Sequence record: OR699282.2
Strand: one strand, 5' to 3'
Length of the DNA: 64,000 nt
The position numbers and the translations under genes are program-made. The notes beneath the pieces are model-generated. The model saw only the letters and a program-made list of their open reading frames with translations. It searched no databases and was not told the origin of the DNA. Shown one piece after another: positions 1,774-60,561 of the stretch. The stretch's first letter is position 1, and the number at the start of each line of letters is the position of its first letter.

Positions 1774-4023
1774 TTAATCAACTATACTATCGTGACGTTT
1801 GAGTGCACGAATTACAATTGCAGCTTGAATTTGTTGTGTAAAAGAACCACCTGCACCAAAATCATGAACAATTTTATTAACACGATAAATTGTTTGGTTA
1901 AATGTGGTTGGTGTATTAATATCCAAAACACCAGTGTTATCATTTATTGATATTACTGGTTGTAATTTTAGTAATAGATACGCTTCAGATGTTATATAAT
2001 TTGCTACATGATAATCATCTGGGTTAATTTCCATATCTTCACCATTAATTACTTGTTCTAGATATTGTAAGTAAGAGTAATCACTCCACCCTAACCAGTA
2101 CGGGTCACCTACTACACGCATATCGAGTTTACACAAAAAAGGTCTATTGTAATAGTTGTCACGTATTTTACGTCTATCCATTTCATATGTGCTGCTGTTA
2201 TCGTTTAACGAAGCGGATAAAGTTGTTTCATTGTTAGTTGCTTCGGTTGGCATTGTGAACACTTCACCATAACGGTGACCAACACCATCAGTGCCACCAT
2301 CGTTTTCTTCATAAGTGGTTACATAATCTTCAATATATTGAGGTAAAACATTGACTTGATAGTTATTATAACGGTCTTGTTCTTCTGCGTTACCAACCTG
2401 CATTTGATTTTTTGCTAAAGTTTCAACTTCAGTTAACAATTGTTGTTGGGCTTGTGTTAACATCCCTCCTAAATCACGAGTTACACGTAAATCACTTGTT
2501 TTTGCCCATGCGTCTGGTATACTATTGTATTGTACACCTTGAATATTGAGTTCTTGGGATGTATGTGTACCTGCATGGTTCGCTACATCTTGTATCGGAC
2601 CAGGGTTACGTGTAGTGGCTACGAAAAATTGCTGATCAAATTTCAAATCCAAATCAAGTATCTCACTATTAAGCCCACTAAATTGATAATTATAAGTTTT
2701 CATGTTTATTTTTGGTTTTTGATCATTAGGATCTACGTATTTTTCTGCGTTCTCAAAAAAGTACTCAAATGTGAAATTTTCAGGTTGTAAATCCGATTCA
2801 TGAACAATATCACCTATTTTAAATCTAACAATATAAAAAATTACTTTATAAACAGAAGTATTACGATAATTATCAAAACCAACGTATTGTTTAACTGGTA
2901 TAATGTTTACAAATTGACGCACACTAGTACTATCATCGGCTTGTACAGTACATGTATCAATAACGTCATCAATAATTCGAGATATAGGAGTACTTGGGTT
3001 CCATGAAAAGTTTTTAGAACCTTGTGCACCACTTTTAGTTGTTCCGGCCTCTGCCATTTGTTTAGAATCATAGTTTATAAACAAATCTTGCAAATCAGGT
3101 GCTACTTTAAATTCGAAAAATTTACCTTCGGATAATTCACCAAATTTATATCTAAGATAACCATATTGTTGGTCAGCCATCTGATTTAATTTATCTTCTA
3201 AATCAAAGCAGAAGTCACCAAAGTTTTCAGCAGTACAATTGAATGGTTCTTTTAAGGTCCATTCAATGTTATCAACTAAAGCTGCTCTATTATGAACTAA
3301 GTTCATAGTATACATCATAGTACTACCACTTTGTGAAGCACTTGCAGTAACACTATTAATTTTAACTGACCAGCGTCTTGTTGTTTCTGGGATAATTTCA
3401 GGTATTCCATTTTTATTAAAGCCAATAAACTTTAATTCCAAGATCAATGGCAAGTCCATAAATTTATGATATCTAAGTTTGTTACTTAACGAAATTAATT
3501 CATCATATAGACTCATACTATTATTTTCAGACATATTAAGTACTGCTGTATTAAAACAATAGTTTGTTGTCATTCCTGGTGTTGAAGGTCCAGCTTGTGT
3601 CATTTGTACACTAGTGATATTATATTTGCCAGTAACACCACTTTCTGATATCACATGTCGTTGCACTTCTGCATCTGGGTAAAGCCAAAAGTTTTTAAAA
3701 TCATCTTTATCTAAGGCAAATAAACAAAAGTGCCAAGTTGGGTTATCATATTTCAATAATTTATTGTCATACGGTATTACAAACTGACTTAAATCGAGAT
3801 CTTCATAAACTTGATCAACACTAGCACTTTGTTTTGGTAATGATACTACATTACTTACATTTGCTTTGTAATTATTTTTTGTAATAGTTTTTACATCATT
3901 TTGTAATGTATTTGCTGTAGCTTTCAAACTATCAAGTGCATTAGATGTGGTGGTTTTAGCCTTACCAGTAATACTTGTAATATCATTTTGAAAATTATCA
4001 ACTGTACTTCGTAAATCTGCCAT
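1774..4023 (-). CDS. Large virion/baseplate hub protein (gp27-like position)
   Basis: 749-aa ORF between the gp5-like and gp53-like genes; C-terminal LDMRVVGDPYW...YRVNKIVHDF..G.FTQ resembles hub proteins. Confidence 0.5.
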   Translation of the reverse strand: MADLRSTVDNFQNDITSITGKAKTTTSNALDSLKATANTLQNDVKTITKNNYKANVSNVVSLPKQSASVDQVYEDLDLSQFVIPYDNKLLKYDNPTWHFCLFALDKDDFKNFWLYPDAEVQRHVISESGVTGKYNITSVQMTQAGPSTPGMTTNYCFNTAVLNMSENNSMSLYDELISLSNKLRYHKFMDLPLILELKFIGFNKNGIPEIIPETTRRWSVKINSVTASASQSGSTMMYTMNLVHNRAALVDNIEWTLKEPFNCTAENFGDFCFDLEDKLNQMADQQYGYLRYKFGELSEGKFFEFKVAPDLQDLFINYDSKQMAEAGTTKSGAQGSKNFSWNPSTPISRIIDDVIDTCTVQADDSTSVRQFVNIIPVKQYVGFDNYRNTSVYKVIFYIVRFKIGDIVHESDLQPENFTFEYFFENAEKYVDPNDQKPKINMKTYNYQFSGLNSEILDLDLKFDQQFFVATTRNPGPIQDVANHAGTHTSQELNIQGVQYNSIPDAWAKTSDLRVTRDLGGMLTQAQQQLLTEVETLAKNQMQVGNAEEQDRYNNYQVNVLPQYIEDYVTTYEENDGGTDGVGHRYGEVFTMPTEATNNETTLSASLNDNSSTYEMDRRKIRDNYYNRPFLCKLDMRVVGDPYWLGWSDYSYLQYLEQVINGEDMEINPDDYHVANYITSEAYLLLKLQPVISINDNTGVLDINTPTTFNQTIYRVNKIVHDFGAGGSFTQQIQAAIVIRALKRHDSIVD

Positions 4024-5211: not shown

Positions 5212-6051
5212 ATGACAAATAGACCAAAGCGTAAAAAGTATCTCAATAATGCTGATTTACTTCGTGAAATACAAAAAAGTAAAATTTCATATTGCTGGTT
5301 ATTAGACAAATCATATAGTATGTATGATTATATTGTTTTTCATGAGTCAGAAATTACTGCTGAGTTACTAGAAAAAGCTAAGGCAGCACGAATTAAACGA
5401 CTGAACAATGAAATGCTTGATAGTATTCGTGAAAAGGAAAATATGAGTGCTAAAAAAGCTAAAGAATATGCAGATGAACACAATTTAGTTATCACTGACG
5501 TTCCAATTGATGAAGTTGTTATTCGTGTTATTACAGATGAACATATTCCACCAGATACTAGAGTTAACTTTGAACCATTCAAGCATTATATTGTAGATAA
5601 TGAAGGTATTCTCTATGAAGTTTGTCGTTCTCACTGGAAAGGCGACCTTGAAACTGGTGAATTCAGTACTGTTCATGGTAAAATTACAAATGAACTTGGG
5701 AAGATGTTCATTAAACTTGCAGAGGAAATCTCACACAAATCTAATTACAGAAACTATACATACTTAGATGAAATGATGGGTGATGCAAGAATACAATTAG
5801 TTAAAAACGCACTTCTCTTTAAAGAGAGCATTCTTTATAAAAAAGATAAACCAGCAGTTCAGCTAAATCCTTTCTCTTACTATACATCATTCGTAAACAA
5901 TAGTTTTCGTTCTATATTGAATAGTGAGAAAAATGTTCGAAATATACGTGATGATTTACTTGAAATGCATGGCTTTACGCCATCACATACACGTCAAATT
6001 GAAATTGAATTGAACATGATTGAAAGGAAAAATGAAGATGGCTCTGTTTGA
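5212..6051 (+). CDS. gp55-like sigma factor for late transcription
   Basis: KYLNNADLLREI at the N-terminus, NYRNYTYLDEMMGDA and NPFSYYTSFVNNSF motifs; sits upstream of gp47/gp46 as in T4-like phages. Confidence 0.85.
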   Translation: MTNRPKRKKYLNNADLLREIQKSKISYCWLLDKSYSMYDYIVFHESEITAELLEKAKAARIKRLNNEMLDSIREKENMSAKKAKEYADEHNLVITDVPIDEVVIRVITDEHIPPDTRVNFEPFKHYIVDNEGILYEVCRSHWKGDLETGEFSTVHGKITNELGKMFIKLAEEISHKSNYRNYTYLDEMMGDARIQLVKNALLFKESILYKKDKPAVQLNPFSYYTSFVNNSFRSILNSEKNVRNIRDDLLEMHGFTPSHTRQIEIELNMIERKNEDGSV

Positions 6052-9234: not shown

Positions 9235-9259
9235 AAGGGAGCCTTAGCTCCCTTTTTTT
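9235..9259. terminator. Intrinsic terminator between convergent genes
   Basis: AAGGGAGC-CTTA-GCTCCCTT followed by a T run. Confidence 0.75.
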
Positions 9260-9735
9260 ATATCAACCATATTTAATTTACCGTCCTTAATCAGCTTTCT
9301 AGCTTGCTTTACACGAGCAGTAGTGTTACTACCAGGGACAACTCCTAACCCTTCCAGAATCGCGTTTTGCTGTGTTGCTGGAAGCCTTTTAAACTTATTA
9401 ACATCCACAGTTAGTGCAGTGTGATGTATAACTTGTTCATCGTCAGGAATGCTGTTATTACGCTCTAAGTAATCAGCAAGATTTCTGAGTACCTCATATA
9501 ATGGTTTATCAGTTAAGTGCTTCATATATCGATTGAAGCTGTTTTGTACCTTTCCTTCCCAAGCATTGACTTCATTTTGAAGAACTTGTCTACAATGTTG
9601 GTTACCATAGTGGTAGTGATCCAGTACTGGTTTAGTTATTGGTTCTTTAATTATAGGATCTATTCCATTTTGTTTCTTTAGTAATTCGTTTCGATAGTTT
9701 GCAGCATCCTTACTATCTTTTAATCTTTTTTTCAT
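9244..9735 (-). CDS. Endonuclease VII (gp49-like Holliday junction resolvase)
   Basis: Q.GIDPI...I..PVLDH.H...HCRQVL..EVN.WEGKV...F.RY pattern. Confidence 0.8.
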   Translation of the reverse strand: MKKRLKDSKDAANYRNELLKKQNGIDPIIKEPITKPVLDHYHYGNQHCRQVLQNEVNAWEGKVQNSFNRYMKHLTDKPLYEVLRNLADYLERNNSIPDDEQVIHHTALTVDVNKFKRLPATQQNAILEGLGVVPGSNTTARVKQARKLIKDGKLNMVDIKKGS

Positions 9736-9765
9736 AATTCCTCACCAAACTATTTGTTATCAAAA

Positions 9766-9773
9766 TATTTATA
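9766..9773 (-). promoter_or_regulatory. Late promoter TATAAATA for endonuclease VII
   Basis: Exact consensus 31 nt upstream of ATG 9735; GAGG RBS. Confidence 0.65.
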
Positions 9774-9827
9774 GATTAATTATTTGCAATATTTTAAGTA
9801 CTTAATGAATATTTTTATAAAAATAGT

Positions 9828-9855
9828 GAGACAACTTTAAAGTTTGTGCTATAAT
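9828..9855 (+). promoter_or_regulatory. Promoter GAGACA-N16-TATAAT driving an ORF-free region
   Basis: GAGACA 9828-9833, TGC, TATAAT 9850-9855; same architecture as 10 gene-driving promoters in the window. Confidence 0.75.
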
Positions 9856-9861
9856 GTTTGT

Positions 9862-10345
9862 TGTAGTAGTGACAATCCTGTTGAATGCAGAAATGCATAT
9901 AAATTAGAACCTGATCCTATCGAAAATGTAGATGGCAGATGAGTAGTTCAACAGTGCGATGAGCAAAAGAAACCCGTTAGATGTGGGCATAGTTTGAACC
10001 CCTCACGGCAATGCGGCTCAATAAAGAACTCCGATAAGCATACAGAGAGTTCCTAGATAGACATATAAGGATCGCACCTTACCAGATTTGCTAAGGGAGT
10101 TTATTAAGTGATTTTAATAAACAGCCTGAAGTTTGATTGTATAGACTTTCAGGTGAGTGTCAGGATGATTAAGACTGACGACCGTTGCACATGACTGCGA
10201 TAGAGAGAAACAGAGCAACCCGCTTTCGTTCTTAATATATTTTTAAGAAATTCGCAATACAATAAATGCTGAAACCATCAGCGTCAAGAAATAGAGACTT
10301 CATTGTCTCTTTTTTATTGTCTTCATTCCCCTGCGGGGGGATGAA
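9862..10345 (+). ncRNA. Candidate large structured non-coding RNA (about 450-480 nt), family unassigned
   Basis: No ORF of 60 aa or more; strong promoter upstream; more than 10 stems including nested long-range pairs; terminator at 10293-10315; locally GC-enriched. Confidence 0.65.
10293..10315 (+). terminator. Intrinsic terminator candidate closing the ncRNA
   Basis: AGAGAC-TTCATT-GTCTCT then TTTTT. Confidence 0.6.
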
Positions 10346-10412
10346 AATGTCCTCAACAAATCCCGTCAAGTATTAAATCTTTTAAAGTTCTTTATAATTA
10401 ATTTAATTAAAT

Positions 10413-10472
10413 GAATATGAGTTACGTAGTAACGAATATTCTTCAGCTAACGAATGAAATGAGTTAGATGAA
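10413..10472. repeat. Interleaved direct/inverted repeats in an AT-rich tract
   Basis: ATGAGTTA at 10417 and 10459; TAACGAAT at 10430 and 10448; two adjacent imperfect hairpins (10413-10441, 10442-10472). Confidence 0.6.
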
Positions 10473-10534
10473 TCCAATAATATTAAAATTAATCCTTTCA
10501 TAATTCAATTCAAATAATTCTGTAGTTTAAAACC

Positions 10535-10561
10535 AAAAAAAAACCAGCAACAATGTGCTGG
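10535..10561 (-). terminator. Intrinsic terminator for the gp26/gp51-like operon
   Basis: CCAGCA/TGCTGG stem with an A9 run on the + strand (U tract on -). Confidence 0.65.
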
Positions 10562-10572
10562 CTATATGAAAA

Positions 10573-10782
10573 TTAGTGCTTCTCGTTTTGTTTTTTAATT
10601 TTTTTATTAAAAGACTTAACTAATAAGTCTCTATCTATTAATGGCATATTAAGGAGTGTTCCATAGTCAATGTTATCCATATATACAGAACATTCCATTA
10701 GTGCATTTTTGATTTCTGACTTATTCAGTTCTATCTCCTTCAGTACTTCTTGTATTTCTTCAGGAGATGACTGGAGAAGCAT
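10573..10782 (-). CDS. gp51-like baseplate hub assembly protein
   Basis: IDYGTLLNMPLIDRDLLV resembles the gp51 motif; coupled to the gp26-like gene by a TAATG overlap. Confidence 0.55.
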   Translation of the reverse strand: MLLQSSPEEIQEVLKEIELNKSEIKNALMECSVYMDNIDYGTLLNMPLIDRDLLVKSFNKKIKKQNEKH

Positions 10783-11618
10783 TACTCGAAAAAATGACTA
10801 GGATCATATTTTAGTCCATCAATTTCCCATTGATGATTACATCCATCACATTCTACTTCCATACTATGAGATACACCAATTTCAAGTACTTCATCCATTT
10901 TTTCACGAATTAGTTTAAGTACTCCCTTCGATTGTTGTCCAAGCCATTCATTAATAAATTCTTTTTCAACTACTTCATCACCATCTGGTGTTATAATTTT
11001 TGCAATAACTCCACCAATCATATCGAAGTTAAGTTGAGCCATGTTTTCAAATACTTCAGAAAATATTTTTACTTTTTCATCTTTATCAATATCAGCAGTT
11101 TCAAGAAACTTAGTCTTCTGCTGCTCACTGAACATGCGTTCAGCAAACGATGAATATTCTTTCCATGTCAGTGGTCTAAATTCTAAACGGAGTCCATTAT
11201 CTAAATCAATTGATGGGATTTCTTCAAATGTTTGTGCAGTTTCAAGAAGATATGATAGATTACGTTCAAATCGACCTTCTTTTTCACATTCAGGACATAC
11301 AACGTTAATATCATATGTTTCTTCTTTAGAAGCAACTTTAATAGCAATAAGAAGCATTTCAACGTCATTTACATACAACTCATCAGCGTCAATTACATTA
11401 GGAACACAGTTTTCAATAACACGGGATACTGCATCTCCGTTTAGTAACATATCGGGGGTATTAAGTGTCATTTCATCACGTGCACTACGTGCACAAACTC
11501 CACATTTGACACCTTTTGGACCTAGAACTCCTTCTTTATAAGGAATAACGCCGTTTGTAACTAACTTAGTACTGATCTCTTCAATTTTAGTGTACTTAGC
11601 AAGTGGATTCATAGCCAT
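10782..11618 (-). CDS. gp26-like baseplate hub subunit
   Basis: NPLAKY, ARDEMTLNTPDMLLNGDA..RVIENCVP, D.EMLLIAI..AS, CPEC and CDGC motifs. Confidence 0.8.
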   Translation of the reverse strand: MAMNPLAKYTKIEEISTKLVTNGVIPYKEGVLGPKGVKCGVCARSARDEMTLNTPDMLLNGDAVSRVIENCVPNVIDADELYVNDVEMLLIAIKVASKEETYDINVVCPECEKEGRFERNLSYLLETAQTFEEIPSIDLDNGLRLEFRPLTWKEYSSFAERMFSEQQKTKFLETADIDKDEKVKIFSEVFENMAQLNFDMIGGVIAKIITPDGDEVVEKEFINEWLGQQSKGVLKLIREKMDEVLEIGVSHSMEVECDGCNHQWEIDGLKYDPSHFFE

Positions 11619-11652
11619 TTTATTAAATCTCCATGTAATAAATGTGTTTTAG

Positions 11653-11716
11653 TATTTATAAGACTAAAAAAGATTAAATTAAACTAATTTTTATATTCTC
11701 TATAGTTTCATAAATA
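11653..11716. promoter_or_regulatory. Divergent late promoter pair
   Basis: TATAAATA on - at 11653-11660 and ATAAATA on + at 11710-11716, between divergent tail genes. Confidence 0.6.
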
Positions 11717-11748
11717 TTTCTATAATACATCTATTAAAAGGGAATGTT

Positions 11749-13953
11749 ATGGCTGGAAATACAAGTGATTACCTACTCCAGCAGTTGGTTAATCAAACTA
11801 AAGATAACAACGATAGTTTGAGTGCTATTCGTGAGTTATTGGCTGAAAATATAAAAAATGATAGAAAGAAATCCGGTTCTAAAAGTGGAAAACGTAATGG
11901 AAGTAATTCATCAAGTACTGGAAACCGTGGCTCTCGAACAAATAACAAAGCTGATGATGGTAAAGAATTTGGAAAAATATTCAAATCATTATCATCTGAA
12001 GTATCGAATGTCGGCAAAACTATGATGAGTACGTCTGCAAACGTTAGCAATGTTGTAAACTCACTAGGAATGAGTGCATCTTCATTTGCTGGTTCATTAG
12101 CAATGATCCCAGGTCCAGTTGGTGCAGCAGCATCTGCATTCAAATTGGTTGCTGACGCTGGTTTAGCAGTTTATAATGTGTTAAATGCACAGCTTGAAGT
12201 TTATAATAGAATAAACAGTGCTGGTGTCGCTCTATCTGAAGGTTACGGCTCCATATTAAAAGGTGCTGGTGCATCAATGATGAGTATTGATGCATTTGGT
12301 GAAGCATTACAAACTCATAGTGCAGTTGTTGCACAATTAGATGGTGCATATGGTGATGGTGTTTCTACATTTGGTAAATTATTGGGTACTGTGCAACAAG
12401 CACAAAATCAATTAGGTTTATATGGTGTTTCTCAAAAAACATTAACTGATTTAACTGCACGTAATATTAAATTCCAAAAGCAATTTGGTGGAAGAGAAAT
12501 GTTACGTAGTATGGATCAAGCAAAAAGTACTGAACAGTTTATCATGAGTATGACTAAGTTCAGTAAAAGTATGGGTGAGTCAGTTGATGCACTATTAAAT
12601 AAAACACAAAACTTAGATAAATCATTAGACACACGTTCAATGCAAATCGCATTACAAAACTATTCTGGATTATCTAGTAAAGCAGCAGTTGCAACATCAA
12701 AAGCATTTAACGAAGCTGCTGCCAGTATGGGTGATGCTGGTGCAGATTTTCTACGTTTAATTTCACATCGTTTAACTATTGGTGGAGTACCAGATGATTT
12801 ATTGACTCCAGTACTGAACCAATTTGCTGATTTAGGTGAGAACTTGGTACGTAGTGGTGTTACTGATTCACAAGAAATTCGCCGTCAACAATTGGAATTT
12901 GTTAAAAAGAACAAAGAACTAATAAAGCAAGATTTATTAAATCAGATACAATTAGGAAACACTACGGCAGCAACCTTCAACCAACAACTACTTGATATGG
13001 AAGCTGCGATTAATGATCCTAAGAGTCAACCAGCAGATAAACTAACACAATTCACTGATAGATTCAATAGATGGATTAGTAAAGAATTTACTGAACCATT
13101 TAATAAAATGTATGCAGATACACAAAATTCTATTGCGGATTACCTTACTGATATTGCAGACCGTACTGATGGTGCATGGGAATTTATCGGAGAGTTAGCA
13201 CTTGATGGTTTTGGTTTGGTTCCTATTGCGAAAGATGCAGTTGCGTATTTGGATAGGATTGGTGGTGAGTTTGAGCAGTGGTTAGAAGGGTTAGGTACTG
13301 AAATTTTTGGTAGTGGATATAATAAAGTTTCAGAAGCATTTGATAGCTTTATGAATAACCTAATGGATCTTCCTGGTAAACTTTGGGATTCTGTTAAAGG
13401 TTGGTTTGGTGGATCAGACGACAAAGTAAAAGTAGAAAACAATTCTGTTACCGATGGTGCAGAAAAAGTTAATAATTATTTTGAAGAAAAAATGAATTCA
13501 TTTGGTGATTATATTTCTAGTTCATTTGATGGTTTTTTAAAATGGAATTCAAGTAGAAACTTTAAACAACCAAAACCCCTTGATGAATCAGTTGCTGAAA
13601 AACTTATTAGTAGTGGTCTTGAAAATAAGCCAAGAGCAACTGCGAGAATCGAAAAATCTGAACATGTTGCACCATATGTTACCATAACTCCAAAAACTTT
13701 TGATAAATCAGCATGGGGTCCAAATGAACCACCAATTCAAGCTGAACCGGACGATTATGAGGCCATGAAAGCGATGATAAATAGTGGTAGTAGTATGGCA
13801 AATGCTAATAATAATGCCACAATATCAGAAGACATGAAAGAGTTACTTAAAAAACTTGCTGATGTTAATGAGCAATCTCTATCTGCCGTGCAACAGACAA
13901 ATAACTATCTAAGAACTATCTCTGAAAACACTCAAGGTGAGAGAAACAGTTAA
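11749..13953 (+). CDS. Tape-measure-like/baseplate hub protein (gp29-like)
   Basis: 734-aa helical Ala/Gly/Ser-rich protein, immediately upstream of the portal. Confidence 0.65.
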   Translation: MAGNTSDYLLQQLVNQTKDNNDSLSAIRELLAENIKNDRKKSGSKSGKRNGSNSSSTGNRGSRTNNKADDGKEFGKIFKSLSSEVSNVGKTMMSTSANVSNVVNSLGMSASSFAGSLAMIPGPVGAAASAFKLVADAGLAVYNVLNAQLEVYNRINSAGVALSEGYGSILKGAGASMMSIDAFGEALQTHSAVVAQLDGAYGDGVSTFGKLLGTVQQAQNQLGLYGVSQKTLTDLTARNIKFQKQFGGREMLRSMDQAKSTEQFIMSMTKFSKSMGESVDALLNKTQNLDKSLDTRSMQIALQNYSGLSSKAAVATSKAFNEAAASMGDAGADFLRLISHRLTIGGVPDDLLTPVLNQFADLGENLVRSGVTDSQEIRRQQLEFVKKNKELIKQDLLNQIQLGNTTAATFNQQLLDMEAAINDPKSQPADKLTQFTDRFNRWISKEFTEPFNKMYADTQNSIADYLTDIADRTDGAWEFIGELALDGFGLVPIAKDAVAYLDRIGGEFEQWLEGLGTEIFGSGYNKVSEAFDSFMNNLMDLPGKLWDSVKGWFGGSDDKVKVENNSVTDGAEKVNNYFEEKMNSFGDYISSSFDGFLKWNSSRNFKQPKPLDESVAEKLISSGLENKPRATARIEKSEHVAPYVTITPKTFDKSAWGPNEPPIQAEPDDYEAMKAMINSGSSMANANNNATISEDMKELLKKLADVNEQSLSAVQQTNNYLRTISENTQGERNS

Positions 13954-13964
13954 GGACGAAAATA

Positions 13965-15704
13965 ATGAGTTGGAAACGACATATGACAGTGGGAAGGTCT
14001 AAACTATCGACCATCCCGAATCAGTCCAGTAATAGCAATAAATCAACAGGAACGAAAACAAATTTCGCTTCCTATCTTCCTGTTGTATATAATGGATTGG
14101 CAAACCGTACTGAGCGTTATAGTCAGTATGAGCAAATGGACCAAGATCCTGAAATTAGAACTGCATTGAATATAATTGCTGACTTTTGTACCCAAAGTAC
14201 TGAAGATTTTGGTTTACCATATAAAATCAAATATAAAGATGATATTGGTGATACTGAAGTAACTACTATTGAAGATCGTTTAGATGCATGGACTGAACAA
14301 AATGATTTTAAAACACGAATGTATGAAATTGTGCGTGGTCTTCTGAAATATGGTGATCAATTTTTCATTCGAGATCCAGAAACATTCGATTGGTATTGGG
14401 TAAGTCCCAAAAATGTTGAGCAAGTATTTGTTAACGAAGCCACTGGTAAAACACCAGTAATTTATTATATACGTGACGTATCATTAAATTTGAAAGATAA
14501 AGTTTTTAGTAACCTTCAAGTAGGATTTGATAAAACCGCTTATCCAGGAGCTATTCCGACAACAATGGGTGGTGGTGGTTCAGTAGCTGCGGGTGGTGCA
14601 TCTGGTTTTACAAGTCAAGGAAATACTGCTGATCCATTCAGTACTAACGGTCAATTAGACGTTATTCCTGTTGGTGCAGAACACGTAATTCATTTAACGC
14701 TAAATACAGGACAAGATGGGGTATGGCCTTTTGGTACTAGTATACTTGAGGACGTATTTAAAGTCTATAAGCAAAAAGAACTTCTGGAAGATAGTATCAT
14801 AATTTATCGTGTACAACGTGCACCTGAGCGTCGTGTATTTAAAATTGATGTTGGTGATATGCAAGCACATCAAGCGATGGCTTATGTTGAAAGATTTAAA
14901 AATGAAATCCACCAGCGTAGAATACCTTCAAACAAAGGTGGAAGTACTTCATTAATGGATGCAGCATATAATCCATTAAGCATTTTAGAAGACTACTTTT
15001 TCCCACAAACTTCTGAAGGTCGTGGTTCAGATGTTCAAACATTACCAGGCGGTGATAACTTAGGACAAATTGATGACTTACGTTATTTTAATAATAAATT
15101 GATTCGTGGTCTTCAAATACCAGCTTCTTATCTACCACAAGGTCCAGATGATGGTGGTGTTTCATTATTTGGTGATGGTGCTACACAAGCTATGGCAAGT
15201 GAATTGCGATTCAATAATCAATGTATGCGTTATCAACGTTTAGTTGCAAAACATTTTGATGCTGAATTCAAAAGATTTATGGTTAAAAATGGATATAACA
15301 TTAGTACTTCATCTTTTGAAGTTATTATGAATCCACCTATTAACTTAGCTTCTTATCGTAAAGCTGAACTAGATGCTAAACTAATTAATACATATCTTCC
15401 TCTTAATGACTTGCCTTATATGGCGAAACAAACAATTCTTGAAAAAATGGGCTTTTCTAAAGCTGATATTGTTAAGAATGAACAAATGTGGTTACAAGAG
15501 AATCCACAAGATGGTTCCCAACCTTCTGGTGGTGAAGAAGATTCCGCTGGATTACAGTCTGTTGGTATTGATGCTCCAAATGATCCTGGAATGGATCTTG
15601 GTATTGATGGAGAAGGTAATTTGGAAAGTGCTGATGCCGAATACCAAGAGCAACAGAGTGGAAGTGGTGGTTTCAACCCTAATAATTTAGGCAATTCTTT
15701 TTAA
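13965..15704 (+). CDS. Portal vertex protein (gp20-like)
   Basis: YEQMDQDPEI, LLEDSIIIYRVQRAPERRVFKIDVG, EDYFFP, GRGSDVQTLPGG, YFNNKL..GLQIP. Confidence 0.95.
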   Translation: MSWKRHMTVGRSKLSTIPNQSSNSNKSTGTKTNFASYLPVVYNGLANRTERYSQYEQMDQDPEIRTALNIIADFCTQSTEDFGLPYKIKYKDDIGDTEVTTIEDRLDAWTEQNDFKTRMYEIVRGLLKYGDQFFIRDPETFDWYWVSPKNVEQVFVNEATGKTPVIYYIRDVSLNLKDKVFSNLQVGFDKTAYPGAIPTTMGGGGSVAAGGASGFTSQGNTADPFSTNGQLDVIPVGAEHVIHLTLNTGQDGVWPFGTSILEDVFKVYKQKELLEDSIIIYRVQRAPERRVFKIDVGDMQAHQAMAYVERFKNEIHQRRIPSNKGGSTSLMDAAYNPLSILEDYFFPQTSEGRGSDVQTLPGGDNLGQIDDLRYFNNKLIRGLQIPASYLPQGPDDGGVSLFGDGATQAMASELRFNNQCMRYQRLVAKHFDAEFKRFMVKNGYNISTSSFEVIMNPPINLASYRKAELDAKLINTYLPLNDLPYMAKQTILEKMGFSKADIVKNEQMWLQENPQDGSQPSGGEEDSAGLQSVGIDAPNDPGMDLGIDGEGNLESADAEYQEQQSGSGGFNPNNLGNSF

Positions 15705-15777
15705 ACATAAATAACAGTGTATAAGAATGAGGGTTTATTTTTACCCTCATTTATAATGCATATTTCAAGGAGATCAA

Positions 15778-16005
15778 ATGTTAAAGGACATCTTTGAATC
15801 TAGCAGTGATTCAATGTACGACCCTGAAGATGATCAGAACGTATATAAAATTACTGATTCCAGAAAACCGAAACTAACATTACAAGTATTAAACAACTTA
15901 AGAAAGTACCGTGAATTTAAAGCACATGAAGAACAACGCCGCAAAAATGTGGTTGCAGTTGTTTATGCCGCTGCACCAACTGGTGACGGTTCTGGGTTAA
16001 TGTAA
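15778..16005 (+). CDS. Small prohead core protein (gp68-like position)
   Basis: 75 aa after the portal; IFES motif and RKPKLTLQVLNNLRK; AAGGAG RBS; late motif at 15707-15713. Confidence 0.5.
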   Translation: MLKDIFESSSDSMYDPEDDQNVYKITDSRKPKLTLQVLNNLRKYREFKAHEEQRRKNVVAVVYAAAPTGDGSGLM

Positions 16006-16106
16006 ATCAAAAATCGCACTTTTTAAAGCTTTTAAAAAAGGCGATTTTATTCAGTACTAAATAATATCATACTTTATACGAATGTAATATATCTATGGAG
16101 GATATA

Positions 16107-16955
16107 ATGGCGAATTTAAAACTACTACAAGAAGCAATTGCGGCGTTTGCAAATGGCGAACAAGATATTGCTGATAAAAAAATGCGTAAGTATTTCGTTG
16201 AGCAAGCTCAAGAAATTAACAAACAACTAGAAGAAAGCATGGAAGATGAAGACGACGATGAAGATTGTGAAGTCGAAGTTAAAGTCAAAGATGAAGAAAA
16301 GCTTGACGAAGATTTTGATGTACAACCAGACGAAGGTCTAAATGCTGAAATCGAATACACCCTTGGTGAAGAAGATGAAAGTGCAGAAGAAGAAGTTGAA
16401 TTCTCTGCTGATGCAGATAGTGACGGTGAAGACGATGTTGACGTTGAAGTGAAAGCTGATGCTGATGTTCCTTCCGAAGACCAATGGGAATCAATCCAAG
16501 ATGCTTTCCGTGGCCTACAACAAATGTTTGATGAAATCGGTGACGGTGAAGTTGATCTAGATTCTGAAGAAGAAGTAGAAGATAGCGAAGAAGAAGTTGG
16601 CGTTGACGGTGACGACGAATTTGCTGATGTTGAATTCGGTGATGAAAAATTCGGTGAATCCTTCAAACTAGAAAAAGTTGCTCCAGTTGATAAGAAAGAA
16701 AAAGCTGGCACTCATTCCAAATCTCCAGTAGCACCAGAAGCTAAATCTCCAGTAGCAGGAGCAGAGCCAGTTAAATTCGCTAAGAAAACTGACCAAGCAC
16801 CACTACTAGACCTAGATGATAAATCTGTTCTACCAAAAGATAGTCTAGATCTTGGTAAAAATGCTCGCGGTGAAATGAAAGATGTTAAAGCACCAAAAAC
16901 TACTGCATCTAATTCTAAATCACCACTAAGCAAAGCACAACCTAAACTAAAATAA
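16107..16955 (+). CDS. Highly acidic prohead core protein (gp67-like position)
   Basis: GGAGG RBS; Asp/Glu-rich body, basic KSP-repeat tail, L.ES motifs. Confidence 0.55.
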   Translation: MANLKLLQEAIAAFANGEQDIADKKMRKYFVEQAQEINKQLEESMEDEDDDEDCEVEVKVKDEEKLDEDFDVQPDEGLNAEIEYTLGEEDESAEEEVEFSADADSDGEDDVDVEVKADADVPSEDQWESIQDAFRGLQQMFDEIGDGEVDLDSEEEVEDSEEEVGVDGDDEFADVEFGDEKFGESFKLEKVAPVDKKEKAGTHSKSPVAPEAKSPVAGAEPVKFAKKTDQAPLLDLDDKSVLPKDSLDLGKNARGEMKDVKAPKTTASNSKSPLSKAQPKLK

Positions 16956-16975
16956 ATATCTGAAAGGAGATCATT

Positions 16976-17599
16976 ATGAGTAGTATGATTCGTGAATGGT
17001 CTTCATTCAATGATTCTAAAGTTGTTTTGGAACATCGTGATAATGGATTTGGTGGGCGTGACTGCTATCTTCGTGGTATTGCTATTCAAGCCGACCAACG
17101 AAATTTGAACGAGAGAATTTACCCTTTATCTGAAATTACAAGGGCAGTAAATAACATGAACCAGCGTTTAGCTAAAGGTGAAAGCATTCTTGTTGAATGT
17201 GACCATCCAGAAACACTAACTATTAACCTAGACCGAGTAGCAGCAATGATTACTAAGGTTTGGATGGAAGGTGCTAATGGTATGGCAGAAATCAAACTAC
17301 TTGATACTGCACATGGTCAAAATATCCGTAAAATGCTAGAGGCTGGTGTAAAACTTGGTGTAAGTTCTCGCGGTTCCGGTAACGTTGATTATAATGGAAT
17401 AGTTTCTGATTTTGAAATTATCACTATTGATATTGTTGCTCAACCTAGTGCTCCAGAAGCATACCCAACAGCGGTATTTGAATCTCTGATGAGTAAGTAC
17501 GGATCACCTTGTAATAGTTCTAAAAAAATCACTGAATCTAAAAAAGTAAATAATTTAGATTCTGAAATATACGATTTTTTCAAGAAATTAAAAGGTTAA
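16976..17599 (+). CDS. Prohead core protease (gp21-like)
   Basis: ECDHP, LGVSSRGSG, DIVAQPSAPEAYP motifs. Confidence 0.93.
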   Translation: MSSMIREWSSFNDSKVVLEHRDNGFGGRDCYLRGIAIQADQRNLNERIYPLSEITRAVNNMNQRLAKGESILVECDHPETLTINLDRVAAMITKVWMEGANGMAEIKLLDTAHGQNIRKMLEAGVKLGVSSRGSGNVDYNGIVSDFEIITIDIVAQPSAPEAYPTAVFESLMSKYGSPCNSSKKITESKKVNNLDSEIYDFFKKLKG

Positions 17600-17610
17600 C
17601 ATTTTAAAAA

Positions 17611-17618
17611 TATAAATA
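17611..17618 (+). promoter_or_regulatory. Late promoter TATAAATA
   Basis: Exact consensus upstream of the scaffold gene; overlaps an 8-bp hairpin TATCTGTA/TACAGATA (17617-17640). Confidence 0.7.
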
Positions 17619-17665
17619 TCTGTATGTTGAAGTACAGATATTTCAGTACTTAAAGGAGAGAACGA

Positions 17666-18781
17666 ATGTCTAAATTAGAAAAGCTTCTAAAAGAATCATC
17701 TCTTTCTGATGAGGCAAAACAGCTAATTCAGGAAGCATGGAATGAAGAAAAGAATACACTAGCCGCAGAGATGCGTGAAGAAATGAAAGGCCGTTATCAG
17801 CAAGATTTGGCTGAACTAACCGAAGGTTTGAATACTATGGTTACTCAAGTCATTGCTGAAGAAATGGGTGCTGTATATGAAGAGAAAAAACGTCTCGTTG
17901 AAGATCGTGTAACTCTACGTAAAACACTAAGCAATTTCTCTGCGTTTTCAAACTCTGTTTTGGCTGAAGAAGTTAAACAAATGCGTAAAGAACGTAAGCA
18001 TCTTCATGAATGCATGGGTAAATTCGTTAATTTTTCTAACGGTATCCTAGCAGAAGAGCTAAAAGAATTCCACACTGAAAAACGTCAACTAGTTGAAACT
18101 CGCGTTAAACTACTTGCTGAAGGTTCACGTCAAATTGCTGAAGCTCGTAATAACTTCATCAAACGTACATCTGAAAGTGCTGCTAAATATATTGCAGAAA
18201 CCACTCAGAAGAATCTATATGCGTTGAAACAAGATCTAGTGGAAGCAAAACAAAATATGTTTGGTCGTAAAATCTTTGAAGCATTTGCTCAAGAGTTTAA
18301 TGTCAAACAATTTAATGAAAACTCATTGCTACGTTCCCTAACTGAATCAATTAAATCTAAAGAAGATGAAATTGCTCAAGTTAAGCAAGAACTACATGAA
18401 ACTGCTAATGCCGTTAAAGCTGCTAAAACCAAACTACGTATTATGGAAGATGCACAAGCACGTAATGCGATTATGTCTGAACTAGTAAAACCACTAACTG
18501 CACAGCAAAAACAAATTATGGAATCCCTTCTAGCTACTTCACCTACTGAAAAGCTTAAAGAAGATTTCAGCAAGTACCATAAGTCAGTACTTAACGGTAC
18601 TAAAGTAAATGAATCTGCTACCACTCGTCAAGCAGTTCAGTCTTCCGCTAAGAAAACTCTTGCAGAAGGTAAAGTAATCACTGGCAACCGTCAGGCTATT
18701 GTTGAAAGCGAAGAAATGACCGCTGACGATATGGCATTCCTAAAAGAACTCGATGTTCTTTCAGGTATCAATAAAAAATAA
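17666..18781 (+). CDS. Prohead scaffolding protein (gp22-like)
   Basis: Long coiled coil between protease and capsid genes; FGRKIFEAF motif. Confidence 0.85.
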   Translation: MSKLEKLLKESSLSDEAKQLIQEAWNEEKNTLAAEMREEMKGRYQQDLAELTEGLNTMVTQVIAEEMGAVYEEKKRLVEDRVTLRKTLSNFSAFSNSVLAEEVKQMRKERKHLHECMGKFVNFSNGILAEELKEFHTEKRQLVETRVKLLAEGSRQIAEARNNFIKRTSESAAKYIAETTQKNLYALKQDLVEAKQNMFGRKIFEAFAQEFNVKQFNENSLLRSLTESIKSKEDEIAQVKQELHETANAVKAAKTKLRIMEDAQARNAIMSELVKPLTAQQKQIMESLLATSPTEKLKEDFSKYHKSVLNGTKVNESATTRQAVQSSAKKTLAEGKVITGNRQAIVESEEMTADDMAFLKELDVLSGINKK

Positions 18782-18819
18782 ACATTTTAAAGCATTTTAA
18801 TAATCAAATTTTTCAGTTC

Positions 18820-18827
18820 TATAAATA
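18820..18827 (+). promoter_or_regulatory. Late promoter TATAAATA
   Basis: Exact consensus 45 nt upstream of the capsid ATG. Confidence 0.75.
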
Positions 18828-18872
18828 ATATCATACTGAAAAACGAATATAACATCTTTAAGGAGATATATA

Positions 18873-20048
18873 ATGTCACAACTACTAAATGAATCCAAAT
18901 GGGTAGCAGTAAAAGAGAAACTAGTTGAAGGTCTACAGGGTACTCGTAAGTCTGTAATGGAAACTGTTCTTGATAACCATCGTAAAGTTATGCTAACTGA
19001 ATCCGCAACTTCTGGTGCAACTACCGCTGGTAACATCGCTACTCTAAACAAAGTGATTCTACCAATTATGCGTCGTGTAATGCCAACCGTTATTGCTAAC
19101 GAAATCATCGGTGTTCAACCAATGACTGGTCCAGTTGGTCAGATCCACACCCTACGTGTGCAATATGCTGATAACGCACCTGGTGTTATCGCTGGTGAAG
19201 AAATGCTTTCTCCATACAAAATCGCTAAATCCTACTCTGGTGATCTAAATGCGGATAATAGCAACCCACAAGCTGCTCCAACTAGCCAACTAGAAGGTAC
19301 TATGGGTCGTCGCGTTAACATCCGTATTCTACGTGAAACTGTTGAAGCGAAATCTCGTCGTCTATCTGCACGTTGGACTGTTGAATCTGCACAAGATGCT
19401 CAATCCCAACATGGTGTTGACGTTGAAGCAGAACTAATGGCTGCAATCGCTCAAGAAGTTACCGTAGAAATCGACCAAGAGCTACTAAGCCGTCTACGTG
19501 CACTACCTGGTGCTGCTGCTGTAACTTATGACCAATCTAAAGTTACTGGTGTTGCAACCTTCGTTGGTGATGAGCACGCTGCTCTAGCAACTCTAATTAA
19601 CCGTCAAGCAAACGAAGTTGCTCGTCGTACTAAGCGTGGTGCTGCAAACTGGGCTGTTGTTTCCCCAACTGCACTAACCATTCTACAATCTGCTACTACT
19701 TCTAGCTTTGCACGCACCACTGAAGGTACTTTCGAAGCACCAACTAACGTTAAGTTTGTAGGTACTCTAAACAGCACTATGCGTATTTTTGTTGATACTT
19801 ATGCAAGTGATGCAGAAGATATTCTAATTGGTTATAAAGGTAATGCAGAAACTGATGCTGGTGTGTTCTATTGCCCATACATCCCACTAATGGCTTCCGG
19901 TACTGTAATGGACCCTAACACTGGGGAACTCGTAACAACTTTTCTAACCAGGTATGGCTATGTACAGTTGACCGATAGCACCAGTTCACTAGGTAACGCT
20001 GCTGACTACTACAGCAAAATCGCTATCAAAAACGTTACTTTCATGTAA
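18873..20048 (+). CDS. Major capsid protein (gp23-like)
   Basis: RRVMPTVIANEIIGVQPMTGPVGQIHTLR, SRRLSARWT.ESAQD, FYCPYIPL, TRYG; strongly optimised codons. Confidence 0.96.
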   Translation: MSQLLNESKWVAVKEKLVEGLQGTRKSVMETVLDNHRKVMLTESATSGATTAGNIATLNKVILPIMRRVMPTVIANEIIGVQPMTGPVGQIHTLRVQYADNAPGVIAGEEMLSPYKIAKSYSGDLNADNSNPQAAPTSQLEGTMGRRVNIRILRETVEAKSRRLSARWTVESAQDAQSQHGVDVEAELMAAIAQEVTVEIDQELLSRLRALPGAAAVTYDQSKVTGVATFVGDEHAALATLINRQANEVARRTKRGAANWAVVSPTALTILQSATTSSFARTTEGTFEAPTNVKFVGTLNSTMRIFVDTYASDAEDILIGYKGNAETDAGVFYCPYIPLMASGTVMDPNTGELVTTFLTRYGYVQLTDSTSSLGNAADYYSKIAIKNVTFM

Positions 20049-20091
20049 TTATAATCGATTTAAAAGATTTAATCAAGAAATTAAAAACAAT

Positions 20092-20117
20092 AGGGACTCT
20101 TCGGAGTCCCTTTTTTT
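20092..20117 (+). terminator. Intrinsic terminator with UUCG loop
   Basis: AGGGACTC-TTCG-GAGTCCCT followed by a T run. Confidence 0.9.
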
Positions 20118-20127
20118 ATTAAAAACA

Positions 20128-20156
20128 TTGACATGATGTTGTTGGTTATGTATAAT
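20128..20156 (+). promoter_or_regulatory. Perfect sigma70 consensus promoter
   Basis: TTGACA 20128-20133, 17 nt, TATAAT 20151-20156. Confidence 0.85.
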
Positions 20157-20189
20157 AGGCACATACACACAAACTAAAGAGACAGAATT

Positions 20190-58960: not shown

Positions 58961-60561
<1,601 letters not shown>

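Follow-up and report, generated by a model that had tools for sequence, protein, structure and literature searches.

The 64,000-nt window analyzed here (sequence record OR699282.2, numbered from its first nucleotide) contains an 837-bp gap in which the ORF list of the window shows no ORF of at least 60 amino acids, and the question is what such a gap encodes. The original prediction was that it carries an undescribed, multi-domain structured phage RNA of ~450–480 nt with its own promoter and terminator. We therefore examined the locus, its relatives in phages and bacterial chromosomes, and the known RNA families that it might resemble.

A predicted self-contained transcription unit in an ORF-free gap

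The gap lies between an endonuclease VII gene on the left (9244–9735) and a small ORF on the right (10573–10782), both on the minus strand, and holds only chance ORFs of 25–45 amino acids on either strand. The GC content is 0.47 at positions 9950–10049, compared with 0.18 at positions 9750–9849. On the plus strand, a consensus scan detected a sigma-70-type promoter (9826–9855) with a –35-like TGAGACA box and the extended –10 element TGCTATAAT; the match itself (9828–9855) consists of GAGACA, a 16-nt spacer and a TG-extended TATAAT. The gap, the promoter and the GC enrichment of the original prediction were accordingly confirmed by the ORF list, the consensus scan and the GC counts. The predicted transcription start (~9862), placed from the position of the –10 hexamer, is followed by a short unpaired 5΄ leader (9862–9877) that is variable between family members. 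The –10 element recurs in relatives: TGnTATAAT or TGnTATACT was found upstream of the Asteriusvirus A, C and D copies, of many other phage copies and of the four aligned copies from bacterial islands, and the Asteriusvirus B copy carries TGATATAAT just upstream of a hairpin and U run that precede the RNA.

We computed the folding energy of positions 9862–10345 and compared it with that of shuffled sequences. The plus strand folded at –131.2 kcal/mol, compared with –108.4 ± 5.7 kcal/mol for the shuffles (z = –3.98; none of 100 was as good), whereas the minus strand gave z = –2.87. Conservation among relatives extends past position 10345, where the predicted RNA had been taken to end, to ~10372, and the sequence beyond is not conserved; the conserved stretch coincides with the predicted transcription unit. 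The interval 9826–10372 (plus strand) is a self-contained non-coding unit composed of an extended –10 promoter, a ~430-nt body, an intrinsic terminator and, at the 3΄ end, a hairpin and tail that are conserved. The predicted RNA would be ~455 nt long if terminated and ~510 nt long if read through.

Covariation supports a plus-strand structured RNA

Across 27 sequences, a model of 104 base pairs was 89.4% paired, compared with 38–43% in controls in which the pairing partners were slid. Compensatory changes were observed at 73 of the 104 pairs, compared with 19–33 in the slid controls and 47.9 ± 2.9 in shuffles (none of 500 reached the observed value); the shuffle-based statistics are inflated by sequence relatedness, an effect of which the slid-partner control is free. 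The covariation score of the model was 0.446, against values of 0.10 or less, and RNAalifold predicted 70 pairs, 42 of them compensatory. For the core domain, for which 26 sequences including a divergent lineage were compared, 95.5% of the cells were paired (37–56% in the slid controls) and 15 of 21 pairs were compensatory. Compensatory changes, the generic hallmark of a structured RNA, thus exceeded the controls, and the pseudoknots also covaried. The strand follows from invariant or frequent G-U pairs (411:418, 484:504, 409:420 and 642:655), because the complementary strand would carry A-C mismatches in their place. We regard it as very nearly certain that the locus represents a real, structured RNA family of the plus strand.

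Since 25–45-amino-acid ORFs occur on both strands and some records annotate "hypothetical proteins" here, one could alternatively read the gap as several small ORFs or as a protein-coding gene that is unusual or has decayed. However, no conserved ORF emerged from 36 representatives, the longest ORFs of which differ in frame, position and strand (8–18 stops per frame), and paralogs differ by indels of 1, 4 and 13 nt, which are not multiples of three. Conservation shows no codon periodicity and peaks in blocks that correspond to paired or unpaired segments of the RNA model. We give a coding origin practically no credence. Several phage records annotate the gap with spurious "hypothetical proteins" or with nothing.

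Predicted fold of the RNA body

The 104 pairs of the model form 20 helices, four of them pseudoknot helices, and the ~430-nt body is predicted to fold into ~20 helices with four to five pseudoknots. All features described below lie on the plus strand. The 5΄ domain (9878–10092) begins with P1 (9878–9885/9947–9954), which is followed by the P1.1 hairpin with its GAAA loop (9886–9897) and by P2 (9911–9921/9931–9938; 7/8 pairs compensatory), which displays the conserved loop GAAAAUGUA. It further contains P2a (9943–9945/9955–9957), whose pair 118:131 is UA in 10, CG in 9 and AU in 7 sequences, P3 (9960–9964/10016–10020; 4/5 compensatory), P4 (9974–9977/10005–10008), P5 (10026–10031/10047–10052; 6/6 compensatory) and P6 (10066–10069/10078–10081), together with the pseudoknots PKa (10011–10013/10062–10064; 2/3 compensatory) and PKb (10037–10040/10089–10092; 3/4 compensatory). 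The invariant linker CUAAGGGAG (10091–10099), in which AAGGGA is unchanged in 42 sequences, leads to P7 (10099–10107/10114–10122), a variable arm that is replaced by longer inserts in other members. P8 (10125–10135/10142–10153; 8/10 compensatory) and P9 (10159–10163/10175–10179; 3/4 compensatory) follow. A module of ~30 nt is found at two different insertion points among the members.

The core pseudoknot domain (10181–10263), identified by covariation, carries the invariant GACCGU. In this domain, P10 (10184–10188/10215–10219) interleaves with P12 (10203–10207/10223–10227), and P11 (10196–10200/10252–10256) and the P13 hairpin (10229–10235/10243–10249) complete the local pairing. The 3΄ strand of the domain (10258–10263) pairs with the P8 loop (10136–10141) as PKc, which is 99.4% paired with 5/6 pairs compensatory. 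An HDV-like topology was considered for the core and rejected: as we read the model, its strands follow a different order, and the interleaved P10 and P12 make an H-type knot. More than 50 nucleotides, mostly unpaired, are invariant; the invariant unpaired blocks are GAAAAUGUA, AUAAAG, GAUAGA, CUAAGGGAG, GACCGU, AGAAAC and ACCCGC.

All complementary segments listed in the original prediction are present at the coordinates given for them, and most of the stems proposed from them recur in relatives: the CTGTTGAA/TTCAACAG stem (P1), the TGCA-GAAA-TGCA hairpin in its position, the pairings GAGC/GCTC, GAACTC/GAGTTC, CCTGAA/TTCAGG, GTCAG/CTGAC and TTCTTAA/TTAAGAA, and the terminator and 10-bp stem at the 3΄ end. 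The GTTTATTAA/TTAATAAAC pairing falls in the variable arm. Two long-range proposals are not conserved. The GTGCGAT/ATCGCAC stem is lost, as many members have a shortened ATCGCAC loop or none at all; closure of the 5΄ end on the 3΄ end through GACAAT/ATTGTC was likewise not retained, so the terminator switch built on it is unsupported.

A conserved module beyond the terminator

Downstream of the core lie the P14 hairpin (GCUGA/UCAGC, within 10268–10288), the register of which shifts between subgroups in our reading of the alignment, and a first direct-repeat motif, AUCAGCGUCAAG (10277–10288), which is conserved in all members. The scan also located the proposed intrinsic terminator at 10293–10315 (AGAGAC-UUCAUU-GUCUCU plus a U run), where the short isoform of ~455 nt probably ends. 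A hairpin and U run occupy this position in ~70% of the members, with 5/6 pairs compensatory, and are missing in the Asteriusvirus B and D copies, RaK2 and the Serratia islands. Beyond the terminator, a further hairpin, UUCAUUCCCC-UGCG-GGGGGAUGAA (10322–10345), was recognized by its conservation and includes a run of five consecutive G that is invariant in 42 sequences. In its 5΄ arm, C or U stands opposite G (at 642:655, UG in 16 and CG in 11 sequences), so the pairing holds on the plus strand only. Within the genome, this hairpin occurs only beside the four RNA bodies. The 3΄ tail (10346–10372) contains the second direct-repeat motif, CAAAUCCCGUCAAG, ends at ~10372 and is conserved in every paralog, ortholog and island copy.

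Motifs 1 and 2, both CGUCAR repeats, change in parallel and in a non-complementary manner. We considered whether the P14 5΄ strand could pair with motif 2 instead, which would form a switch; by eye this fits some subgroups but fails for the Asteriusvirus A and C copies, and it was rejected. The simple picture of a terminated sRNA sits uneasily with a conserved module 3΄ of a bona fide terminator and with the parallel, non-complementary co-evolution of two direct repeats, and either observation could point to a role at the DNA level or during transcription.

Copies in jumbo phages

A BLAST search located the RNA at 4–5 places per record in 72 phage records. In one genome, four copies were found at ~18.3, 128.4, 208.1 and 261.6 kb, all on the same strand, and a covariance model recovered exactly these four. 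All four Asteriusvirus copies sit in ORF-free gaps. A covariance model of the core domain (R1) scored 104.7 bits at the locus described here and detected no other copy within the window; pattern scans of genomes and metagenomes gave many matches that arose by chance in coding sequence, such as sugar-nucleotidyltransferase genes. The copy number is 4 in Asteriusvirus, ~5 in other RaK2-like jumbo phages and ~2 in the Klebsiella RaK2 group, and a more distant metagenomic phage lineage also carries the family. In that lineage, the copy at the baseplate-hub locus recurs by homologous hub, structural-protein and portal genes, and the B copy recurs beside the dam gene in RaK2; the recurring neighbors indicate that at least these positions are old.

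The position of the terminator, directly after the body in ~70% of the members and followed by conserved sequence, raises the possibility of a cis-acting leader that acts on its own polymerase or senses a signal and thereby controls terminator read-through, as in HK022 put-like antitermination or a very large riboswitch or attenuator. Consistent with this, copies B, C and D run in the same direction as their downstream genes, and the Citrobacter and E. coli island copies described below also point towards downstream genes. However, the copies in the window, in the Serratia fonticola island and in an Enterobacteriaceae MAG are convergent with the genes downstream, and those genes are unrelated from copy to copy. 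Moreover, some members lack any terminator, no conserved anti-terminator pairing was found and the 5΄/3΄ competition is not conserved. We consider a leader distinctly improbable.

Copies in bacterial islands

Single intact copies were also found in Citrobacter, Serratia and E. coli, in chromosomal islands that carry an integrase, where they retain the promoter, body, 3΄ hairpin and tail. In the available 8-kb stretch of one Serratia island, the RNA is accompanied by a recombinase and two ParB/RepB-like proteins; the island of E. coli LR-29-1 resembles a defence island, with no replication genes seen, and one island also carries the candidate defence system PDC-M45. To look for a shared protein that could be the partner of the RNA, island ORFs were compared with the phage genome by tblastn. 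Once spurious ORFs inside the RNA were set aside, the only matches were the N-terminus of the L140 tail-fibre-like ORF and a DUF4326 protein that one island carries, and no protein common to the different islands and the phage was found by these searches. A blastn search with the Citrobacter copy found no match among 72,556 plasmids.

These copies bear on the possibility that the locus is an RNA-primed replication origin. The T4 origins oriF and oriG consist of a middle promoter and an unwinding element, and ColE1 RNA II is a folded pre-primer of ~550 nt. By analogy, the transcript would form a persistent R-loop and prime DNA synthesis, the post-terminator G run and hairpin would mark the RNA–DNA transition or a helicase-loading site, and the island copies would serve to have the islands replicated by the phage replisome. 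In its favor, the present RNA resembles these systems as a promoter-driven, ~500-nt non-coding transcript, close to RNA II in length, with its 3΄ region by a conserved G-rich element; several dispersed same-strand copies (four to five) in a T4-like genome of ~350 kb recall the several origins of T4; DNA is conserved beyond the terminator, including the invariant G run; and the Serratia island holds the RNA together with ParB/RepB-like proteins. In addition, the –35-like box, TGAAAC or TGAGAC, resembles the 'divergent RpoD-like' promoter class of phage CBB, some examples of which lie near DNA-synthesis genes (PMC5259590). On the other hand, a fold with four to five pseudoknots and ~100 covarying pairs, in which more than 50 mostly unpaired nucleotides are invariant, is more than a primer needs, and the G-U-tolerant variation of the 3΄ hairpin indicates selection at the RNA level there too. 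The T4 origins are not mutually homologous and have no long conserved RNA fold. The lack of a match among the plasmids searched speaks against an origin relying solely on host factors, the GC skew at the four loci tracks the direction of transcription only, and the E. coli island gives the impression of defence rather than replication. An origin is, in our judgment, unlikely, while deserving more weight than a leader.

Comparison with known RNA families

We searched the whole window with the 4227 models of Rfam 15 at the gathering threshold and obtained no match; these models include RNase P, tmRNA, 6S, SRP, group I and II introns, GOLLD, ROOL, HEARO, OLE and raiA, as well as pRNA, riboswitches, and HDV-like and other ribozymes. 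A sensitive scan of positions 9700–10620 (E up to 10) returned a 5.5-bit tmRNA fragment and otherwise only terminator-like look-alikes of sRNAs, the Rfam search of six homologous loci (bacterial islands and RaK2 among them) found nothing at the RNA, and ARAGORN detected no tRNA or tmRNA gene in the window. The earlier judgment that the RNA does not look like a tRNA, tmRNA or RNase P agrees with these results. A group I or II intron was rejected, as no model matched and the element stands between genes and has a promoter of its own, with the flanking genes here on the opposite strand. The RNA was not described in the literature and record annotations examined. It matches no catalogued family and apparently has not been described before. 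The central prediction of an undescribed structured RNA with its own promoter and terminator is thus supported by strong covariation, by the conservation of promoter and terminator among relatives and by the negative family searches.

The closest parallels in character are GOLLD and ROOL (RF01998 and RF03087), which likewise exceed 400 nt, have an intricate fold with many covarying helices and pseudoknots, are encoded by phages or integrated elements with their own promoter, have no known function and were found by comparative analysis. However, neither model matches in sequence or structure, even at E up to 10; here, the hosts are jumbo myoviruses of Enterobacterales with 4–5 diverged paralogs per genome, and the locus is not beside tRNA genes. 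The phi29 pRNA (RF00044) is another structured RNA that a phage makes from a dedicated promoter, and it works in trans as a particle, as proposed here; the multiple copies of the present family could in principle assemble. However, pRNA is ~120–174 nt long, single-copy and found in Bacillus podoviruses, and its model does not match. A precedent for abundant non-coding RNAs in such jumbo phages is provided by ncRNA001–004 of PA5oct, a phage related to 121Q, PBECO4 and RaK2; these are RNA-seq-defined, ORF-free, strongly transcribed and 236–619 nt long (PMC7318152). Two of the four, ncRNA001 and ncRNA002, were compared with the present family by nhmmer --max and by a covariance model, and neither found any homology.

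HEARO and omega RNA resemble the family in being structured and pseudoknotted, in having several dispersed copies and in joining a conserved scaffold to non-conserved sequence right after the 3΄ tail, although the body here is about twice as long. An IS200/IS605-type element with a guide RNA (omega RNA or reRNA) was rejected, as no TnpB, IscB, TnpA or transposase was recognized beside the four phage and five island copies (the phage neighbors being judged without a Pfam scan). More generally, the locus could be a mobile or recombinogenic repeat at the DNA level, in which RNA structure is secondary: a site of attachment or packaging, for instance, or the remnant of a MITE-like or IS200/605-like element that has hairpins near its ends. 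The dispersed copies, the co-evolving direct repeats flanking a two-hairpin segment, the adjoining integrases in the islands and the ~30-nt module at two insertion points would fit such a repeat. Nevertheless, the compensatory changes, spread over 20 helices including long-range pseudoknots, and the G-U asymmetry indicate selection on single-stranded, plus-strand RNA; the HEARO and IS605-related Rfam models do not match, and the hub-locus and dam-gene positions are old. We accordingly hold a DNA-level repeat to be very improbable.

A candidate trans-acting RNA particle

Beyond what had been predicted, the RNA is a multi-copy, heavily pseudoknotted family with a conserved 3΄ module after the terminator and with copies in bacterial islands. 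The explanation that we favor, at a probability of roughly 0.55, is an undescribed RNA gene whose folded product acts in trans as a ribozyme or as the core of an RNP. Host RNA polymerase would make the RNA from several gene copies, and the folded RNA itself would be the functional product, working as a compact tertiary particle in which the invariant loops and the P10/P12 pseudoknot core may form an active or binding site. A single partner may read both of the co-evolving CGUCAR repeats, and the island copies would most plausibly use or compete for this partner. A proposed link to an 'Hfq-like' ORF is unsupported, as this 55-amino-acid ORF (58961–59128) has no Pfam match. The preference for a trans-acting particle over its rivals is, taken separately, close to an even call.

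Known large structured RNAs of bacteria and phages are very few and include rRNAs, RNase P, group I and II introns, tmRNA, OLE, GOLLD, ROOL, HEARO and raiA. To our knowledge, each of these classes has proved catalytic, RNP-forming or architecturally unprecedented. The present family shares these hallmarks: it combines several pseudoknots with ~100 covarying pairs, and dozens of its unpaired nucleotides are invariant. An entire clade of phages with 350-kb genomes that grow on laboratory E. coli, such as 121Q, PBECO4 and G17, carries it in 4–5 copies, which makes the family directly testable. As a practical point, the gap is mis-annotated or left blank in several phage records. The intact copies in chromosomal islands add an unexplored phage–host or phage–satellite angle. 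We tentatively suggest, as a possibility that is itself rather doubtful, that this is a new large, ornate RNA, a ribozyme or RNP core, that RaK2-like phages need in high dose and that islands have repeatedly captured to mimic, titrate or exploit its partner. If true, this would place an RNA at the center of a phage-versus-island conflict, under a promoter of the class seen in phage CBB.

The locus and its copies in phages

The RNA unit (window 9826–10372, plus strand) lies in a gap between an endonuclease VII gene (9244–9735, minus strand) and a small ORF (10573–10782, minus strand), beyond which lies a T4-type baseplate hub gene (10782–11618, minus strand). In a blastn search of phage records, this gap region of 841 bp was identical to that of Escherichia phage BAU.Micro_ELP-22 and >99% identical to those of 121Q, PBECO4 and G17, all three of them ~350-kb jumbo myoviruses of the genus Asteriusvirus. 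The original prediction had described an 837-bp gap, and no ORF of ≥60 aa was found there; the predicted promoter was recovered as a promoter-like site (GAGACA, a 16-nt spacer and a TG-extended TATAAT; 9828–9855), and the terminator (10293–10315), the rise in GC content and every complementary segment listed were located as predicted. Compared with dinucleotide shuffles, folding gave z = –3.98 for the plus strand and a weaker z = –2.87 for the minus strand. A 55-aa ORF proposed to be Hfq-like does exist at 58961–59128, but a Pfam scan with E values of up to 0.01 allowed gave nothing for it; it directly follows a 374-aa ORF whose sequence resembles a ribonucleotide reductase small subunit.

By blastn, we found the segment in 72 of 50,697 phage records, all from RaK2-like jumbo phages with Escherichia, Salmonella, Klebsiella, Erwinia, Yersinia, Serratia, Cronobacter, Pectobacterium and "Xanthomonas" as named hosts. 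Identity ranged from 67% to 100% over approximately window positions 9905–10350, with four to five matching places per record and two in the Klebsiella RaK2 group. The window contains one copy only; in a complete, unannotated genome on which copies were mapped (OR844650.1), four were located at ~18.3, 128.4, 208.1 and 261.6 kb, all on the same strand, all in ORF-free gaps and with mutual identities of 70–84%. To sample more widely, IMG/VR, metagenomes and a set with one genome per species were scanned for sequence patterns and the matches confirmed with nhmmer, which left 36 full-length sequences as representatives at ≤95% identity. In one metagenomic lineage, clearly more distant, the core blocks are retained together with the 3΄ half, and at least two of its members adjoin homologs of the baseplate-hub, structural-protein and portal genes of the window copy. 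On metagenome contig OERT01000271.1 (locus L140, 1–5755), a divergent copy adjoins a 1366-aa tail-fibre-like ORF, and an MFS-transporter gene ends ~160 bp away from it; this locus may be a prophage or a chromosome junction.

Rfam 15 gave no matches in the window at gathering thresholds and, at E up to 10, nothing meaningful at the RNA, here or in six homologous loci. ARAGORN found no gene, and neither of the two RNA-seq-defined ncRNAs compared from PA5oct, a related jumbo phage, was homologous. The annotation under blastn matches in phage records was either nothing or "hypothetical proteins", no RNA gene was annotated at the copy in the records of G17, UE-S1 and E. coli LR-29-1, and a description of the family was not found in the searchable literature. 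As far as Rfam 15, the inspected genome annotations and the searchable literature show, the RNA family is new; the feature is real, and its original reading as an undescribed structured phage RNA is supported. In UE-S1 (L002, ON568341.1), a "repeat_region" assigned by the depositors (3132–3289) covers the 5΄ half of the RNA. The weak Rfam matches at 10529–10613 (minus strand), to Arrc14, CyaR, RyhB and Esr41, all coincide with the intrinsic terminator that belongs to the small ORF (stem 10542–10563); they are look-alikes of terminators and not sRNA genes.

Conserved fold

RNAalifold predicted 70 pairs from 27 sequences, 42 of them with compensatory changes, and pseudoknots were added from column-pair scans, giving a final model of 104 pairs in 20 helices. 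Under this model 89.4% of alignment cells were paired, compared with 38–43% when partners were slid by 1–3 columns. Two-sided changes were observed in 73 pairs, compared with 19–33 for slid partners and 47.9 ± 2.9 in shuffles (0 of 500 reached 73), and the covariation score was 0.446, against ≤0.10 in controls. Compensatory changes also marked the pseudoknots PKc (P8 loop with 10258–10263; 99.4% paired, 5/6), PKb (P5 loop with 10089–10092; 3/4) and PKa (10011–10013 with 10062–10064; 2/3), as well as helix P10, which is interleaved with P11/P12 (100% paired, 3/5). The core domain (P10–P13) was 95.5% paired when sequences of the divergent lineage were added, and 15/21 of its pairs showed compensatory changes. 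The GTGCGAT/ATCGCAC and GACAAT/ATTGTC pairings of the original prediction were not conserved in relatives.

Invariant or frequent G–U pairs assign the RNA to the plus strand. A mobile repeat acting at the DNA level is difficult to reconcile with covariation that is strand-asymmetric in this way. Fifty-three positions were invariant in 42 sequences with a mean column identity of 48%, many of them in loops and junctions, and no conserved ORF was found in the family. A module of ~30 nt (GUACAAnAnAGnUCCGUC..., GUACAAnAnAG(A/U)UCCGUC(C/U)AAAAUU) occurs at two different peripheral sites across members, the P7 arm and the P13 loop (columns about 345–385 and 517–545 of the family alignment A2; e.g. 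12330–12375 and 12195–12230 in locus L007), and looks like a movable peripheral element. The P13 insert of UE-S1 is 17 nt longer than that of the window.

Promoter, terminator and 3΄ module

Conservation of the RNA unit begins at the promoter. Among the four paralogs of one Asteriusvirus genome, the A, C and D copies have a TGnTATAAT extended –10 element directly upstream, and the B copy has TGATATAAT upstream of a hairpin and U run that precede the RNA. In place of TTGACA, the –35-like box reads TGAAAC or TGAGAC (e.g. 9826–9855; 3470–3500 in locus L090), resembling the "divergent RpoD-like" class reported for phages CBB and GAP32 (PMC5259590). The copies in bacterial islands share this box, which raises the question of their induction by an infecting phage.

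A covarying hairpin and U run follow the ~430-nt body in ~70% of members; the Asteriusvirus B and D copies, RaK2 and the Serratia islands are without this hairpin. Further on (window 10322–10372), every member carries a 10-bp hairpin whose G run is invariant and then a tail with CGUCAR at its end; within the genome, this module was seen only beside the four bodies. Because the terminator is present in ~70% of members and the module beyond it in all, two isoforms, predicted at ~455 and ~510 nt, may be produced. Motif 1 at the end of the body (AUCAGCGUCAAG, 10277–10288; A2 columns 585–595) and motif 2 in the tail (AUCCCGUCAAG, 10360–10370; columns 676–685) are mutually non-complementary direct repeats that change in parallel: in main-group sequences the two share their last base, A (CGUCAA) or G (CGUCAG), and in the divergent lineage ACGAAG stands at both places. 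Conservation stops at the end of the transcription unit, and the genes downstream are unrelated or convergent; the convergent copies argue against a cis-acting leader or antiterminator.

Copies in bacterial chromosomes

Intact copies were found in chromosomes of Citrobacter amalonaticus, Serratia fonticola, Serratia sp. and an Enterobacteriaceae MAG. In C. amalonaticus a large serine recombinase lies immediately upstream of the RNA, and a CI-like repressor and a Ner-like gene come after it; in S. fonticola a recombinase of this large serine type is followed by two ParB/RepB-like genes and then by the RNA, adjoined by a duplicated rof gene. In S. fonticola GTA-SR07 (L097, 61–5490), the RNA shares with the recombinase and both ParB_N/RepB-like proteins a compact stretch that may be a very small integrative element with its left end outside the locus, and the two near-identical rof copies lie upstream of tilS. 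In the MAG (L083), a TPP riboswitch (5385–5481, minus strand; 73.5 bits) lies ~0.9 kb from the RNA; it is presumably chromosomal and would mark a nearby island boundary.

Two of 5,426 complete E. coli genomes carry a copy. That of LR-29-1 (L202, NZ_AP027515.1; 14001–14583) is unannotated and lies in a ~10.8-kb island (9900–20600) between ffs and ybaA, together with an IS3-disrupted tyrosine integrase and PDC-M45, a PADLOC candidate defence system of dual-OB, DUF488 and DUF4326 genes. In a tree, the RNAs from islands were polyphyletic among those of phages, which suggests several transfers. When spurious ORFs inside the RNA were left out, tblastn of the island ORFs against the phage genome matched only a DUF4326 protein (one island) and, at its N-terminus, a tail-fibre-like ORF; no protein was common to different islands and the phage in this comparison.

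None of 72,556 plasmids contained a match. This absence and the degree of structural conservation weigh against an RNA-primed replication origin, like T4 oriF/oriG or ColE1 RNA II; in favour of such an origin are the dispersal of the copies, the class of promoter and the conserved module with its G run beyond the terminator.

Proposed function

Comparative analysis demonstrates, at the level of sequence, a family of plus-strand structured RNA genes with a conserved promoter. Selection on pairs, pseudoknots and unpaired blocks is typical of RNAs whose product is a tertiary fold. Because selection here acts on ~100 base pairs, long-range pseudoknots and unpaired invariant blocks, we infer that the folded RNA would form a trans-acting compact particle, either a ribozyme or an RNP core, supplied from several gene copies. 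We speculate that the island copies use or compete for the partner of the phage RNA. The function of the RNA is directly testable in laboratory E. coli phages.
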